A stretch of 64,000 nucleotides of DNA, from contig JAWQFM010000030.1 in assembly GCA_033442325.1 (NCBI GenBank), forward strand, positions 240,450-304,449, read 5' to 3'. This document shows positions 42,597-50,560 of this stretch, piece after piece (positions within the stretch are counted from its first letter, which is position 1; every line of letters starts with the position of its first letter). The notes beneath the pieces were generated by a model that saw only the letters and a list, made by a program, of their open reading frames with translations, did no database searches and was not told the origin of the DNA. The DNA is from Salpingoeca rosetta. Its lineage: Eukaryota; Protista; Choanoflagellata. Made by a program: the position numbers and the translations under genes.

Positions 42597-44281
42597 TCAG
42601 ACAAATGTGGAGCGCGTGGAGGTGCCACGGCGCATGAACGAGCGAACAGAGGCACGACTCGTGTTGAGCAGAGTGGTACGGTTCAGACGGCTGCTGCTGC
42701 TGCGGTTCAACACCGATGACTGGTTGTGGAGGGACACAGGCAGCGTTGTGTTGAGACCACCCCCACCACCGCGGGTCGTGAACGGCGCCTTTGATGATGA
42801 CGACGACGACGACAAAGGCCAGGGGCCGCGGCGCGATACAAAAGACCGCTGCATGGTCGACGGCTGCCGGCGTGGGCGTCCAAACTGCCGCACCTGTTGC
42901 TGCTGTTGATGTTGCTGCTGTTTGTCATGGTGTGGCATGAGCGTGTAGGAAGCGTTGGCAGCGCTGCTTGGGCCATCTGTGTTGGTGTGCTGCATTGCCC
43001 CAAACCCCTTGGCTTTGAGTTGCTGCTGCTGTTGCTGACGTTGGTTCAGTAGCTGCTTGCGTGGATGGATGCCAACGACGGAGGAGGGCTCGCTCGGAAC
43101 CTGGAGCGCTTGCTTTGGCGTCTTGGTTTGCTTGCAAGCATCAGCGTCATCAGCGCCGCGGTTGAGTGGGAGGTGGAAGACGGCAAGTGGAGAGCCCGCC
43201 TTGCGCTGCCCGGCCACCGACGCCTGCGTGGGATGCAGTTTCAACGGTGACTTGCACTGCTTCTGTTGCTGCTGTTGCTGTGATGCCTGCATCTTTGACG
43301 GCTGCACAAACGTAAACGCACCCTTTTGCTGCTGGGGTTGTTTCTGCTGCTGTTGCAGTTTCTGAATGGCGTGTTGGGAGACAGGCACCGATGCATCCAC
43401 GGACGCTGCTGATGACAACCCCGACGATGACGATGACGACAGGACTGGTGATTGCAGGGCCGACGCACTTGCTGCTGATGCTGCCGGTGTCTTGGGTTTC
43501 GCACCGCTGCCGCCAACGTCCACAGCGCTGTCGCCCTTGGCAAAGGTGAAGGTGGTGGCAAACGCCGCACGAATCGCAGCCGTGTCCACACCAGCACCGC
43601 TGCTGCGCTCAAGCGCCATGGCCAGCTGCTTTGCAGACGACCCACGCACCGCTTCTTTGCTGTTGGTGGTGGACGTGGAATTCTGCTGCAGGTCGGTTGT
43701 GTCCACGTGGTGCTGGCTGCCGCGCGCGCTGCTCACGGCGGAGCGGGTGGCGTGCATGTCCAGACCACTGTCCTTGTCGCGCACGAGGAACAGCCCCCGC
43801 GAAGGACGCTGGCTCGCTGGAACGCTTGGCACGGGCCCAGAGATGCTTGACCGCCCACTCTCCGCCGGCACTGCCGTTGACGACGTTGTCGATGTTGCCG
43901 AAGCAGGCGCCACTGTACTCGTCGGCGTGAACGCGGAGCCAGTGGTGAACACCGATGTCACAGATGCAGCTGACTTGGGCGGCGCAACAGCATCGGAATG
44001 CTGTTGCTGGTCATCGGAAGCACAGTGCTGACTCAGAGCTTGCAAGCCAAGCTGCTCGAGAGATGAGCGCACGTGCTCATCCGTTGCATCTGCACATCGT
44101 GAACACGACAAGATGCGTCATCAAGCGGTGAAGGGATGAATGGGTGAGTGAGATGGTGGCGGGGCTCATTCAATTGAAGGAGTGAGTGAGCACAAGGCCA
44201 AGAACAATCAATGTACAGGGACGAGAACGTGCATTTTCACAACAACAACAACAACAACAACAGCAGCAGCAGCAACAACAG

Positions 44282-44316
<35 letters not shown>

Positions 44317-46993
44317 GGACAAAGACGGGAACCCACCATGGCTGTATCGTGGTGCCTTGCTCGAGCCGTAAATGGCCGCCTCAATTGCAGCGGTGGACAT
44401 TTCATCCAGTGCATTGCCGCCGTTATCCTCGTCGTCGTCTTCATCCTCGGAGGACTGCCATTGTCGACATACAGGCTTTGGTGAGTCACAACAAACACGA
44501 AGCTTAGGGTAGGTAGCAGGTGCATGCACTTGTATGTATCAGCACACGTCAGCCCCGCACACACACACACACACACACATCACAACCTGTTGCCCCTCTC
44601 TGCACCCTTCGGCCCTCCCTCCTCTTCACTCCAACTGCTTCATCCTACCGATCCGAATTCATCGCTGTCGTAGCTGGTGAGGGTTTGCACGGTCGTCTGA
44701 TCCAGTTTCGGCGATTGCACGAGCATCACCTCGCTCACGCCGCCACTGGCCTCACCATCACTCGTCTTTGTCGGCGACAGGACAATGCTGGTTGTGCTGA
44801 GGTTGTGGGCGTCACTTCTCGCCATCTCAGCAAAGCTGGCGTTGTTGCTGCCGGCGTTGTAGGCATTATCAACTTCCACGTTTGACGCTGACGATGGCGC
44901 AATGCCCGTGGCGCCTGCAGCTGTTGCGAGTGTGTGTGGTGGGGTGGGCGTGGCCTTGTCTGCAAGCACGTTCCGCGTGGATGGCCCAAACAGCAGCGGG
45001 CTTTCGCTCTGGAACGACGCGTTGTGTGTCCTCGGCGATGCCAGCAATGCCTGGTCAAGTCCATCCCCATCATTACCACCATCACCGCTCGTGTTCCCGT
45101 TACCAGCACCAACGCCGTAACCAAAGTTGCTGCGACGCGCAATCGCACTCGCACGTGACGGGGACGCTGCGACTGAAGCAGTGGCAGGAGCCGTCTGGTT
45201 GAGTGTGTTGGTGTTGGTGGCATAACCAGCGCTGCTGGTGTGCATGACACGTGCTGCGTTCGGGGAGGAGGAAGACCCAAGCACATGCTGGTTCGTTGCC
45301 GGTGTGCGTTCGTCAAACACCAACTGCTGACGTGAAGACTGTGCACTGCCGCCAGCGCCGCGACCAAACCACCCATGTTGTTGTTGCTGTTGTTGTTGTT
45401 GCTGCTGTTGTTGCTGGTGTTGTTGTTGAGGGCTAAGCGGGAACTGAAACCTGTTGATGAGGTGAGGATGCTGCTGCTGCTGTTGCTGCTGTGATTGTGC
45501 CTGGACGTTGGAAGAGTGCAGGGGGCTGTTGTATGCCGTGGTGTTCGCTGATGCCGGGGCAAGTGCAGATCGCAGGGGCGACAGTGCTGATGAGAGTGGC
45601 AGCTCCGGCATGGAGGCGGATCCAAGGCCACGCAGCGGTGACGGCGGTGCAAACGGCGATGGTGAAAACGGGTGCACACGCCCTTGCTGCTGCTGCTGCT
45701 GCTGCTGGTGGTGGTGGTGATAAACAGCACCGCTGCCACCATTCAGGTGGGCTGGAATGACAAGTTGCGGTTGGCTTCGCTGGGTGACAGGACCACCCGT
45801 GTATGGCAGCGTCATGTCCACGGATTTGACACCAGCACTTCGCAGCGGCGACCCAGGACTGCTGCCCCACCGCCGTCGTGGCGACTTGTGCTGCTGCTGC
45901 TGTTGGTGGTGCCATGCGTGCGGGGTCTGTGCAGCGGAGGCGCTGGCGTTGTTGGGCGCATTGGCACCAGCACTGATACCACCGGCACGACGGCTGCTGT
46001 GGGCTGATGCGGGGGCAGACGTGTTGAGCAAGTCAAGCACGCTCGCATTGGCAGCATCACGCGTGTCATCATGGCTGTATGCAAAGTGGCTGGGGAGGGT
46101 CACGGAGAGTGGTGAGGTACCGCAATCGCGCATGACAACAGCACCAGCACGCCGGCGGTGGCTTCCGTGTTTGGACACACCACCACGCGATGGGGACGCT
46201 GCTGCTGATGATGACGACGACACAGCCACCAAACGCTCCACATCGCTGCCGAGGGAGGAAGGATTCGTGCTTGCGGGGAAGCGGAGAACAGGGACACCTT
46301 TCTGGTTGACCAGAAACAGCTCAAAGTTGTCCTTGACAAAGATGCCGTGTGGAGACTGTTCACGAAGCGTGTTGCGCAAATAGCGGAACAGCGGGCTCGC
46401 ATCAGGCCCGTTGACACGCACCTGCATTGGTGGTGTTGCGGTGAGGAGTTGGGTGGGGGGGGGGGACAAGTGCGATGGGAGTGGAGGGAGGGGTGGGATG
46501 TACGTCAGTTGTGTTGAAGGCGAAAGATCAAGAACATGCACATGTCTTTGAGCTTGATGCATGTATCGTGCACATCCATACATACACACACACACGCACG
46601 CACACATATCACATGGCAAGCGCACGCACCGTCTTGTGCACATCAAAGGTGATGTTGAGATCCTCAATCATTGCGCGCGTGTCCTCCTCGTCGTCATCTT
46701 CGCCTTCAAATTGGACGCACGGGAACGCACAGATGCAAAGCCCACGGTCCTTGAACCTGCGGAGACAAAGAACAGAAAGATGATACAGAAGCGAAGGGGG
46801 GGGGGGGAGCAAAACGATTGTGCAAAAGGATAATAAGAGGGGGGAGGGAGTGAGTGTTTGGGTGTGAAGGGGAGAGTTGTGACGTGTGATAGGCGGGGGA
46901 TTTGATGGGGGCAAGATAATCTCTCGCAACGTTGGCGCACGCATGAAGGCGATGAAGTCGACCACACACATACACATACACACACACACACAA

Positions 46994-47063
<70 letters not shown>

Positions 47064-47831
47064 GTTGTAGAGGCTTTGCAGCTGCGTCATCTTCTTTGTC
47101 GCTTCCTTGTCCTTGCACGATACGTTGGTGATAAGTAGGACAGTATCCTTGTACACGTCCATGGAGAGTGGCTTGTTCGCGCGAGTGAACACGGAATACT
47201 GATACACGTTCTTTGCCAGGGAGAAGTCATCCTGAAACAACGCATGCGCAAGTTAGTGTGTGTAGGTGCGAGTGAGAGTGAGAGTGAGTGTGTGCGTGCG
47301 TGAGAGAGTGCGTGTGTGTGAACAGGAACACGTCACATGTGTTAGGGTGCGTGCGTGCGTGAGCGAGAAGCACTTGATCAGATGTAAGAGTGGCACTTGC
47401 AAGCCCATCTCCGCCTGCCCTCACTGCACACACACACACACACACACACACGCCATTTCCTCACTTTTGCCGTCTCGTGGTACTCTGCACCGGCCTCCAC
47501 CAGCGCGTGTATCCACATCTCTTGCTCCTCGGGCGAGCGCGCCGATGCCTGCAGGCAAATGTGCTTGTGGTCGGGGCCTGTCACGCCCAGCACAAAGCCG
47601 TTCTTCGTCTTGTTGGGCTGTGCATAGCGCACGCGAAAGGGCGCGGGCTTGCTGAAGAGGCGCACAAACCCCAGCGGCTGTGATGACCGCTCGGAGCTGA
47701 AGTGGTAGATGATGACGCGTGATGGCGATGGTGCAGAGAGAACGCAGAACAGCTTCTTCCACCCGAGGCGCCGGCTCTTCCGGCGCACGGACAGCCACCC
47801 ATACATCAGCGTCTACGTGTTGGTGTGTGTT

Positions 47832-47874
<43 letters not shown>

Positions 47875-48361
47875 GTTTGTGAGGGGGAGGGGGGAAGAGG
47901 ATGAGAGGAGGCGCAAGTATTGACATGTGTGCGCGAGTGCAAAACACAACGCGACGAGTCAAAGCAATACAAGAATGCATGCAAGGCATCATTAGGAGTG
48001 TCAGTAGCAAAACAAGCAAGGAGGCCATGTTTTGCACCCGCACGTGTTCTTCGGCAATCAGCGAGCGAACGGAGGGCAGATGATGGTGCTCTGGTCCAGT
48101 CAACCTGATGTGTCGCATCAGGTAGGAGAGAAGGTAGGTAGAGTCATATGAGCATGGTGCCATATGAAATGATTGCGTCATCCGGTTTCTTGTGTCCCCT
48201 GGTCACGCACTGGTAAGTCCATGTAACACAACACGACACAGGACAACACACAACACAACACGCACCTGAAGACGAGGGATGGCGAGTCTGCGAAATCCTT
48301 TGCGTCTGGAATGGAGTGGATGAGATTTCCAACGACCAGCAGTTGGCCGGTTTGGATCGCC

Positions 48362-48408
<47 letters not shown>

Positions 48409-49072
48409 TGCATGCGTGTGTGTATGTGAGTATACGACGAATTGTTGAGGTATTCAAGAGAAGACCACTGGATAGCATCGAGTAGATGTGCTTTGAGCCA
48501 TGTGTGCACACTGCAAAAGCGACCATCATTTTTGCTCAGGAGCAGCGCATGTATGTCAATGACCACAGCACGCACATGGCGATAAACAAAAGTGCAAACC
48601 CACAAGAAAAGGGCCGACCCGCACCAAGCAGAACACACATGCAACCACACCTCTTCGCGTGTGTCTGCACGATCCGTGGCCACGAGCCAGTTGACAATGT
48701 CAGCGCCCGTCTGTGCGCATGGGGAGTGATTGTTCGTGTATGTCAAACGAGGCAGTTTATGTGAGGGAGTAAGTCAAGAAAAAAAGCAATGTCGCGCACA
48801 ACACGCGACAAAGAACACGCACAGGCGTTGACACTCACACACGCTGTCATGCACACGCTTGGAAGCCATCACCACCCAACATCCTGCTGCACCATGACGA
48901 CAGCGATCAGCAGCACGTGCTGACTCACCATGGCGTGTTTGGAGTGGGAGAGGAGAGACACGCGTCTGTTTCCTGCCAAACCGGAAGTGCGGAGCTCATC
49001 TGCCGTCCGCTGGATGGAAGCGCGGACCTGCACATACGTAAACACACGAAAACACACGTGAACACATGCAAG

Positions 49073-49112
<40 letters not shown>

Positions 49113-49411
49113 TGCGCGCGCGCGCGCAATAATCATCACACAAACCCACCCAACCAAGCATACCACACCCAACCAAGCACCCGTTCACCCATACACACCC
49201 ATCCGCACCCACACGGTTAAATGCGCACCTCGTCTGGGAGGCTGTCCCATTGCGCGGAGAGCTGCAGCGGTCGCGGTGACGGCGTCAGCACAAGTTCCTC
49301 CAGCGTGCTGCTGCGCTTCCGCCTCCGACCAGCGGGAACACTTACGGGCGGTGGCGGTACAGACAGCGTGAGCGATGACTTGTGGCCTGCCCTCTTCTTA
49401 GCGGCACTGGT

Positions 49412-49453
<42 letters not shown>

Positions 49454-50560
49454 TGCTGTGGATGAGGTTGTGGACGCTGCTGTGGTGGCGTACGATGCTG
49501 CTGTGCTCATGTTGCTTAGGGTACTGGTCATGGGGTTGCTCGAATGGCTGGTGGTGCTGTACACACCGCTGCCGCTGCCGCTGCTGTTGCTGTTGCTGCT
49601 GTGGCTGTGGCTGTGGCGGATGCCGCTGGCAGTGGACGTCGTTTGGTTGGTGTCGCTGCGCGCACCGCTCGTCCGGCTCACGCTGTCGTCAACAGCACCG
49701 CTGCCACGTCCACAATGAACATGTTCATGCTCATCATCACCATCACCATCCTCGCCATCCGTGTCAGCGACGAGGTCACGTACTGCCTGCCACGCGCCAT
49801 CAAAGTCGCTGAAGGCATCATCGCTGTCGTGGACGGTGGACGATGCTGCAGGTGTCACCAGTAGCACGTGCGCTGTGTTGCCGCTGCTGCCGCTGCGGCT
49901 GGCGCTGTCGCTGTCGTTGGTGTGTGCGGCACCGCTATCGCTGTGGCTTCTGGCTGTGGCTCCCTTTGCCTTCTTGTTGCGCTTGCGTTCCTTCTTCTGT
50001 TGTTTCCGTTGTTTCTTCAGCTGCTTCTTGTCCTTCTTTGTCTCCTTCTTCTTGGATGTCAGAGCGGCAGCATCGTCATCGCGCTTGCTGTCGTCGTCAT
50101 TGTCGCTGCTGCCAGCAGCATGGGTGGTGGTGGTGGTGGTGGTGTTGATACCGGTGATGGAAGATGGGGGCGGCCTCGGTACGTCCACATCTTTCATTAC
50201 TGCAGCGGTCGTTTGTGTGGTGGCCGTGGTGTTGGCGAGTGGGGGAGCGTTGTATGTTGCTTCGTATGCGTTGGTTGTGTTTGAGGTGGGCGATACCTCT
50301 GCATCCAGCACATCTCCTCGTCCTCCTCCTCGAACCTCCTCCTGCTGCTGCTGCTGCTGCTGTGGGAGGGTGTCAGTCTTGGCGGGAGGTGGTGCGGTGT
50401 CGCCTGTTCCGCCCACGCTGATAGCGGACGAGAACATTTGCGGAATTGATCGGTTCATGTGTTCTTGTGGCGTCTGGTGCTGGTGGTGCTGCTGTAGTTG
50501 GTGCTGCTGTAGTTGGTGTTGTTGGTGTTGGTGTTGTTGTTGTTGGTGGTTCTGTACCAT
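42597..50560 (-). CDS. Multi-exon DEP + PH + glutathione-peroxidase-fold protein with long disordered termini (5' end uncertain)
   Basis: DEP ~49030-48266 (TGADIVNWLV..TREEAIQTGQLLVVGNLIHSI..FADS..FR); PH ~47812-47465 (YGWLSVR..WKKLFCVL..PLGFVRL..EQEMWIHAL); GPx ~47232-46225 (VLLITNVS, AFPCVQF, VNGPDASPLFRYL, NFELFLVNQKG). Downstream exons stay in phase to RSTFV* at 42597. Confidence 0.8.

Follow-up and report, generated by a model that had tools for sequence, protein, structure and literature searches.

Glutathione peroxidases (GPx) of the monomeric type, such as GPX4, also called PHGPx (PDB 2obi and 6hkq; Schistosoma mansoni 2v1m/2wgr), are stand-alone proteins of approximately 170 amino acids with a catalytic tetrad of selenocysteine (Sec) or Cys, Gln, Trp and Asn. 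In GPx structures these tetrad positions lie within hydrogen-bonding distance of each other. The yeast protein Gpx3/Orp1 (Hyr1, PDB 3cmi) uses the GPx fold for signalling through protein-protein contact rather than for bulk detoxification. In calsequestrin, a thioredoxin-type fold has lost its redox cysteines, and acidic residues bind Ca2+ as a property of the surface and the polymer. Pleckstrin and other proteins with both DEP and PH domains carry these two as a side-by-side membrane-targeting pair. Pseudo-enzymes are common in signalling, and we know of no case in which a GPx fold has been recruited into a DEP-PH scaffold with a PDZ-type end; our full-text literature searches found no description of a DEP-PH-GPx protein or family. 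Here we describe such a gene in the choanoflagellate Salpingoeca rosetta. The window we analyzed is a stretch of 64,000 nucleotides (contig JAWQFM010000030.1, positions 240,450 to 304,449 of the forward strand), and all coordinates below are positions in this window. The gene lies on the minus strand at 42597-50560 and has 11 exons which, spliced at GT..AG sites, encode a protein of approximately 1891 amino acids.

Along the protein, a low-complexity N-terminal region is followed by DEP, PH, a GPX4-type domain and a disordered tail of approximately 1060 amino acids, which ends in the C-terminal residues STFV. Like GPX4, the GPx-like domain keeps the FPC..Q, VNG and NF.KFL motifs and the catalytic Asn. 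Unlike GPX4, it has Asp in place of both Sec/Cys and Trp, it has lost the Gln, its Gln loop is one residue shorter, and it sits within a large multidomain protein. Gpx3/Orp1 is among the sequence and fold matches, but it is a single domain and requires its peroxidatic Cys, of which this protein has none. In contrast to pleckstrin-type proteins, the DEP-PH pair is followed here by a thioredoxin-fold domain. We consider it probable, though well short of certain, that the gene encodes an expressed, lineage-conserved choanoflagellate scaffold in which a monomeric GPX4-type domain was remodelled stepwise into a non-catalytic module.

The domain assignments come from both the individual exons and the spliced product. 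The PH exon matches Pfam PH (PF00169) with 32.6 bits against a cut-off of 25.1, covering profile positions 3-103 of 105. Exons 7 and 8 match GSHPx (PF00255) colinearly, with 22.0 bits on profile positions 1-46 and 21.3 bits on 49-89, and after splicing the GPx-like domain matches a profile that we built from 117 canonical GPx with 111.6 bits. The DEP domain (PF00610) is split over four exons, of which one, encoding 20 amino acids, gives an E-value of 0.025 (profile positions 19-38). The DEP region as a whole is 37-38% identical to the DEP domains of two orthologues, which themselves pass the Pfam cut-off with 45-75 bits. No Pfam family is recognized in the N-terminal region or the tail.

Public sequencing runs aligned over 44000-49999 provide the evidence for expression. 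The assembled contigs are RNA-like (their label, “RNA?”, is a guess, but the introns are absent). Contigs of 1.7-1.9 kb from three studies (X4, X5, X9) run from exon 1 (49401-49229) through DEP, PH and the short GPx exons into exon 9, reaching 45732, and their joints fall at the predicted sites 48929|48710, 48266|48104 and 46630|46421 as well as 49229|49027, the exon 1 joint, which is present in three runs. The joint 44649|44454 is found in all three runs and eliminates an in-frame stop at 44640; this stop, considered as the end of the protein, was rejected accordingly. In the bin 44000-44199 the contig depth amounts to 90 covered bases, i.e., 44000-44089, consistent with an acceptor at 44090/44089. 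The contigs break at CAG-type repeats only. One RNA run available as raw reads (X19) has almost zero depth on the domain exons; its reads fall mostly on CAG-type repeats and are uninformative for strand or transcript ends. A first-pass annotation, made from the letters of the window, had placed DEP, PH and GPx in a single protein and had named GPx exons on a separate transcript as one result that would refute it. The RNA-like contigs of all three studies join the GPx exons to DEP and PH.

The catalytic site carries the main observation. In an hmmalign alignment, one Asp (GAC, 47109-47111, in TNVSCKD) falls in the Sec/Cys column and another (46329-46331, in VKDNF) in the Trp column, both with high posterior. 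The catalytic Asn is kept at 46326-46328 and is invariant across all family members compared there. A Cys at 47115-47117 lies two residues before the first Asp. At the same positions, the canonical GPx set has Cys in 114 of 114 sequences, Trp in 117 of 117 and Gln in 108 of 109, so the substitutions seen here are far from chance variation. The first-pass annotation had read the site as Asp/Glu/Asp with the Asn retained and a new Cys at −2, and the codon positions that it cited, for both Asp residues and the Glu, are exact. Its Gln-to-Glu replacement stands in part. The Gln is lost however the loop is aligned, and the loop after FPxxQ is strongly acidic (EGEDDDEED) and contains no Gln. Glu 46699-46701, in FPCVQFEGED, lies at or next to the Gln position and has a low posterior in the Gln column. 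Its assignment follows from how a one-residue deletion in the loop is aligned: if the gap is moved to the other side, Gly occupies the Gln column and the Glu becomes the usual Glu after Gln. From FPxxQ to [VI]NG the loop measures 29 residues in this gene and in genomic contig L010 from another organism, 30 in the three relatives P0010, P0006 and P0001 introduced below, and 31 in canonical GPx. Sec/Cys, Gln and Trp are thus lost from the domain while Asn is kept, and from the absence of residues that are near-invariant in GPx we infer that it is non-catalytic.

Is this architecture peculiar to one genome? We searched 1.84 billion representatives exhaustively with the PH exon (phmmer) and obtained only eight matches. 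Two of them are complete proteins, P0001 from Salpingoeca infusionum (1308 amino acids) and P0006 from S. urceolata (788 amino acids), in which Pfam recognizes DEP, PH and GSHPx in the same order; the two score 58.9 and 98.6 bits against GSHPx. P0004 and P0009 are truncated models from a third organism (contig L009), and contig L010, from a fourth, encodes DEP, PH and most of the GPx-like domain. The DEP-PH-GPx-like arrangement that had been proposed from this one sequence therefore recurs in the same order in S. infusionum, S. urceolata and both contigs, that is, in at least four other organisms. Six marine metagenome contigs (L011-L016; ENA/Tara, approximately 650-730 nucleotides) carry the PH exon of a closer, uncultured relative, with 48% identity over 156 aligned residues and 63% over the last 41 residues, the part matched by a further protein, P0002. 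The PH domain of these metagenome contigs has a Ser/Gly/Asn-rich insertion of approximately 35 residues in the loop after ...PFRVRY. Among the remaining phmmer matches, P0003 and P0005 are repeat proteins and were rejected as relatives, and P0008 is an unrelated triple-PH protein.

A profile search added a further protein, P0010 (403 amino acids; transcript contigs L017-L020, from four runs of one project), with a DEP-like region, a weak PH and a canonical Cys-GPx. Its first 240 amino acids align colinearly with the DEP and PH of P0006 (E-value 5e-4). It has the same domain order as the S. rosetta protein, and the helix leading from PH to GPx is conserved (W...AGA.Y.E). It differs in having an intact C/Q/W/N tetrad and in being without the disordered tail and the PDZ-type end. 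These features suggest that P0010 is probably a tail-less relative and probably still an enzyme, and it may possibly be a living representative of the active ancestor.

The tetrad, given in the order Sec/Cys, Gln, Trp, Asn, varies widely among these relatives. It reads C/Q/W/N in P0010, C/E/D/N in S. urceolata, D/E (or G)/D/N in this gene, D/K/A/N in S. infusionum and D/Q or E/G/N in L010; the partial sequence from L009 apparently has Ser at the Sec/Cys position and covers this tetrad position only. Asp is thus found at the Sec position in three of five members, and the Glu and the second Asp are common to this gene and S. urceolata. Two lineages have Ala or Gly instead of Asp at the Trp position, and Asn alone is invariant. 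The Cys at −2 (SCKD here) recurs only in L010 (ACLD) and is absent from S. infusionum (AATD) and S. urceolata. The first-pass annotation had read the three acids as a sign of repurposing, as a cation or basic-ligand site or a sensor. The orthologues do not support a conserved functional unit of all three: by sequence comparison, each acid of this gene goes back to an earlier ancestor, but the combination is not kept.

These comparisons bear directly on one specific proposal, namely that the three acids and the Asn form a new, selected site in the old pocket, on the membrane-facing side, that binds either a basic ligand or a cation such as Ca2+ or Mg2+. It has some appeal, as carboxylates stand beside a conserved Asn where canonical GPx have near-invariant Cys, Gln and Trp, the adjoining loop is strongly acidic, the Asp at the Sec position is common to three lineages that form one clade, and the Glu and second Asp recur in S. 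urceolata. If the fold is kept, as in the orthologue model, the carboxylates would be close to each other. On the other hand, the combination breaks up in S. infusionum and L010, the Glu itself varies with gap placement, and the Pfam scan of the exons found no metal-binding motif or family. Calsequestrin is similar in having acidic residues on a thioredoxin-type fold without its redox cysteines; it is unrelated in sequence, and its cation binding does not involve a remodelled active-site pocket. We regard a dedicated cation or basic-ligand site as unlikely.

A maximum-likelihood tree groups the four choanoflagellate domains in a single clade (Shimodaira-Hasegawa-like approximate likelihood ratio support, SH-aLRT, 94). 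The three Asp-bearing domains are a subclade within it (95), with S. urceolata as the sister, and the GPx domain of P0010 adjoins the choanoflagellate clade with a support of 75. The score against the canonical profile falls stepwise along the same series, from 233 for canonical GPx through 201 for P0010 and 154 for P0006 to 104-112 for the Asp clade. In the simplest reading of these sequences, the active site appears to have been remodelled in steps. The family would descend from an active fusion of a DEP-like region, PH and Cys-GPx, a state in which P0010 may still be. Next, with the Cys still in place, Glu would have replaced Gln and Asp would have replaced Trp, as in S. urceolata; a single change of Cys to Asp would have followed in the common ancestor of the three Asp-bearing lineages (this gene, S. 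infusionum and L010); and the Asp at the Trp position would later have drifted to Ala or Gly in two lineages.

A single origin of the Asp, retained in three lineages, also invites another explanation, in which the residue mimics a permanently hyperoxidised (sulfinate-like) Cys and locks the domain in a peroxide-exposed conformation or partner-binding mode. The Cys-bearing S. urceolata protein and the canonical P0010 point to a redox-active ancestry. Yeast sensors of the Gpx3/Orp1 type, however, signal via sulfenic acid and a disulfide relay, not via sulfinate, and L009 appears to have Ser at this position. The idea is borrowed by analogy from peroxiredoxins: in a plant peroxiredoxin, replacement of the peroxidatic Cys by Asp has been proposed to mimic the hyperoxidised state and confers chaperone activity (PMC6316004). 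We think it improbable that the Asp acts in this way.

Could the domain instead remain a redox enzyme, using other cysteines? A peroxidase or thiol-disulfide activity might be carried by the −2 Cys (SCKD) or by the FPC or C-I-C cysteines. The −2 Cys is present here and in L010, and the domain contains several other cysteines. But S. infusionum and S. urceolata lack the −2 Cys, every tail-bearing member has lost the activating Gln and Trp, and the Cys of FPC is Ser in two members, so that a residual redox activity seems quite improbable. The same genome also contains canonical GPx genes, at G000:C17:394367-394829 (L002 1501-2359), G000:C9:1440013-1440868 (L003) and G000:C26:249901-250125 (L001). 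In the gene on C17 (NTASG*GL), an in-frame TGA coincides exactly with the Sec position and FVKW/NYTKF is retained; judged from these motifs it probably encodes a selenoprotein. The gene on C9 is a Cys-GPx (NVASECGV, VQWNF). With one TGA-Sec and one Cys gene in the genome, peroxidase function is covered elsewhere.

We next ask how strongly the remodelled domain is constrained. Compared in pairs, the S. rosetta, S. infusionum and S. urceolata proteins are 34-40% identical in the GPx-like domain, 37-42% in DEP and 31-38% in PH, compared to 25-28% in the tail; by this measure the GPx-like domain is under about the same constraint as DEP and PH. The model of the S. infusionum domain has a predicted local distance difference test score (pLDDT) of 93.2 and a predicted template modelling score (pTM) of 0.90, and confidence drops in the Gln loop alone. 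In the PDB it superposes best on S. mansoni PHGPx and human GPX4, with template modelling scores (TM) of 0.92-0.93 and root-mean-square deviations of 1.5-1.7 Å, better than on the tetrameric GPX1. The DEP-PH-GPx core of S. urceolata is modelled with pLDDT 86.6 and pTM 0.71.

These values speak to whether the GPx-like part has any function. It might be a decaying remnant, or the fusion itself might be an artefact of the gene model; the catalytic residues are lost, and the branches of these domains are longer than those of canonical GPx (0.6-0.86 versus a median of 0.27). Against both stand the transcript contigs of three studies, each joining the exons, the recurrence of the architecture in four other organisms, and a domain as well conserved as DEP and PH and confidently folded in an orthologue. 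We consider decay or artefact very improbable indeed. The suggestion in the first-pass annotation that the domain had been repurposed rather than left to decay agrees with its conservation and with the fold of the orthologue.

Docking of the S. infusionum PH and GPx-like domains as two chains gives weak support for a contact between them (ipSAE 0.37, compared to 0.00 for the best of 3 controls). The runs share at least 85% of their contacts, with a partner pLDDT of 89 or more. Of 78 solved complexes, 51 reached the mark used, as did 2 of 108 mismatched pairs. A pass with an ipSAE of 0.60 or less was seen in just 5 of those 78 solved complexes and in all 4 mismatches that passed.

The C-terminus suggests how such a scaffold could be anchored. 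The first-pass annotation had noted that the protein ends in a class I PDZ-type motif, STFV followed by the stop, and this ending is kept in both complete orthologues: all three complete proteins have [ST]-x-V at the C-terminus, RSTFV here and RSTAV and QMTFV in the orthologues. S. rosetta has PDZ scaffolds of the post-synaptic type. Judging from the domain families, DEP and PH would tether the protein to a membrane and a PDZ scaffold would bind its C-terminus, with an acidic Y-x-SDEFGSS motif and a basic RRxxS stretch in the tail acting as regulated linear motifs. It is tempting to hypothesize that the inactive GPx domain no longer works as a peroxidase and instead binds, through its surface, a lipid of the membrane or what was once its redox partner. 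The acidic residues would then be the present state of a remodelled pocket in this lineage rather than a conserved triad.

Several points weigh against a non-catalytic scaffold module remodelled in steps. The loss of catalysis is read from the sequence, in which residues near-invariant in GPx are missing, and the evidence for the fold comes from models of the S. infusionum and S. urceolata orthologues. The substitutions are ordered by parsimony on a single unrooted tree, and only five family members were compared, two of them partial. The kinship of P0010 is moderate, as its PH match, at 21.4 bits, falls below the Pfam cut-off and its place in the tree has a support of 75. Furthermore, three diverged lineages retain the Asp at the Sec position, and Glu and Asp are common with S. 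urceolata; such retained acids hint at selection on the pocket and would fit a specific new site better than a passive surface. That the remodelled pocket is functional in itself, with Asp/Glu/Asp/Asn binding a cation or a basic lipid head-group, or with the Asp as a fixed mimic of hyperoxidation, is possible but doubtful. If it were so, the closest relatives of animals would possess a constitutive signalling adaptor, independent of redox state, that derives from a peroxide sensor, and each step would be documented by living intermediates (C/Q/W/N to C/E/D/N to D/E/D/N).

Within one protein architecture, the family spans a graded series of a rare kind, from an apparently active enzyme, through a form in which Cys is kept while Gln and Trp are lost, to forms whose peroxidatic position holds Asp. 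Stepwise pseudo-enzymisation can thus be put to a direct test with a small number of recombinant domains, and methods for genome editing and tagging in S. rosetta have been published. Choanoflagellates are the sister group of animals, and the protein could show the co-option of a redox enzyme into membrane signalling complexes before animals arose. Should the domain prove a passive structural element only, it would still be a useful, if ordinary, addition to the choanoflagellate-specific domain shuffles.

Other searches set the range over which relatives were sought. The profile search that detected P0010, made with alignment A2, also returned P0006 and many canonical GPx of 160-200 amino acids. 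In word-indexed protein searches, region 170-560 of P0001 found only itself and the full-length alignment A3 found only P0001. A metagenome scan with the PH exon of the Tara relative matched 337 patterns and confirmed zero relatives. Searching the ESM Atlas by shape gave matches to the GPx domain only, with no DEP-PH-GPx cluster among the large clusters. In the same resource, a 541-amino-acid GPx cluster from Oomycota resembles P0006 and P0010 at 0.95-0.96 by language-model features, an unverified lead.

The gene model reads as a single open frame across the spliced minus-strand exons, and every intron is GT..AG. The window, part of an assembly of 68 contigs that totals 55.4 Mb, is eukaryotic in character, with approximately 56% GC and short GT..AG introns, most of them with microsatellites. 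Exon 1 (49229-50560, minus strand, as are all exons below) encodes the low-complexity N-terminal region of approximately 444 amino acids, poly-Gln and Ser/Thr-rich, in an open frame that ends at a GT donor at 49228; the ATG at 50560-50558 is the presumed start codon. DEP begins in exon 2 (48929-49027), which is bounded by AG/GT sites and by contig joints at 49027 and 48929 and aligns to the orthologue DEP. Its core (TGADIVNWLV...) is in exon 3 (48651-48710), the exon with the Pfam DEP match noted above and with a contig joint to exon 2. Exon 4 (48266-48360) continues DEP and is defined by its splice sites and the contig joint to exon 5 (48044-48104), which holds the end of DEP and the linker and is in frame with a donor at 48043.

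The end of exon 5 differs by 6 nucleotides from an alternative model that ends it at 48038. The contig piece beside the 48104 joint is 59 nucleotides long (48044-48102), and the coordinates in the contig record put the PH exon 6 nucleotides earlier than in the 48038 model. Together these place the end of exon 5 at 48044, with the frame kept and a protein of 1891 amino acids. Two in-frame GT donors lie 6 nucleotides apart at 48038-48044 (GTGCGG|GTGCAA), and the assembled transcripts of three studies take the upstream one, 48043. The choice of 48043 over 48037 removes Val-Arg from the DEP-PH linker.

Exon 6 (47465-47812) encodes the complete PH domain and a conserved W..A.V..GA.Y.E helix leading into the GPx domain; it is recognized by Pfam PH, and a single contig spans it and its neighbors. 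The GPx-like domain is distributed over three exons. Its N-terminal third is in exon 7 (47062-47231), placed by Pfam GSHPx, the codon map and hmmalign, and its middle, with the FPCVQFEGEDDDEED loop, is in exon 8 (46630-46756), placed by the second GSHPx match. Exon 9 (44649-46421), joined to exon 8 at 46421|46630, encodes the C-terminal third (46421 to approximately 46225) and then passes into the Ser/Ala/Gln-rich disordered tail. Exon 10 (44337-44454), reached by the joint 44649|44454, encodes an acidic tail segment. Exon 11 (42597-44089) encodes the rest of the tail and ends in ...RRGTSTRSTFV with the stop at 42597-42599, the frame being held across the intron at 44090-44336. A (TGC)n run at 44230-44328 could be read as poly-Cys; we rejected this reading because the run lies inside that intron.

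Of the ten introns of the gene (44090-49228), most begin G/T-rich, up to a (TG)n of approximately 60 nucleotides at 47061-47000, and most end C/A-rich, as with the (CA)n before 47813; the intron at 48361-48650 ends in (CAT)17.

In the tail, the end of exon 9 and exon 10 together form a conserved acidic motif that crosses the exon 9/10 junction, YDSDEFGSSSED in this gene and YASDEFGSSTEE in S. infusionum. The match to S. infusionum across the junction supports that splice. The short linear motif itself (44649-44662 with 44433-44454), an acidic Y-x-SDEFGSS-acidic sequence, looks like a casein-kinase-2-type site. Near the end of the protein, a basic Ser-rich stretch is common to S. infusionum and S. 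urceolata (GSSRATMLNKSL and GSMRASRLNRSL), with a weaker match here (RTTLLNTSRASV). In the S. rosetta protein, a basic RRxxS-rich stretch (42600-42680) lies just before the PDZ-type end.

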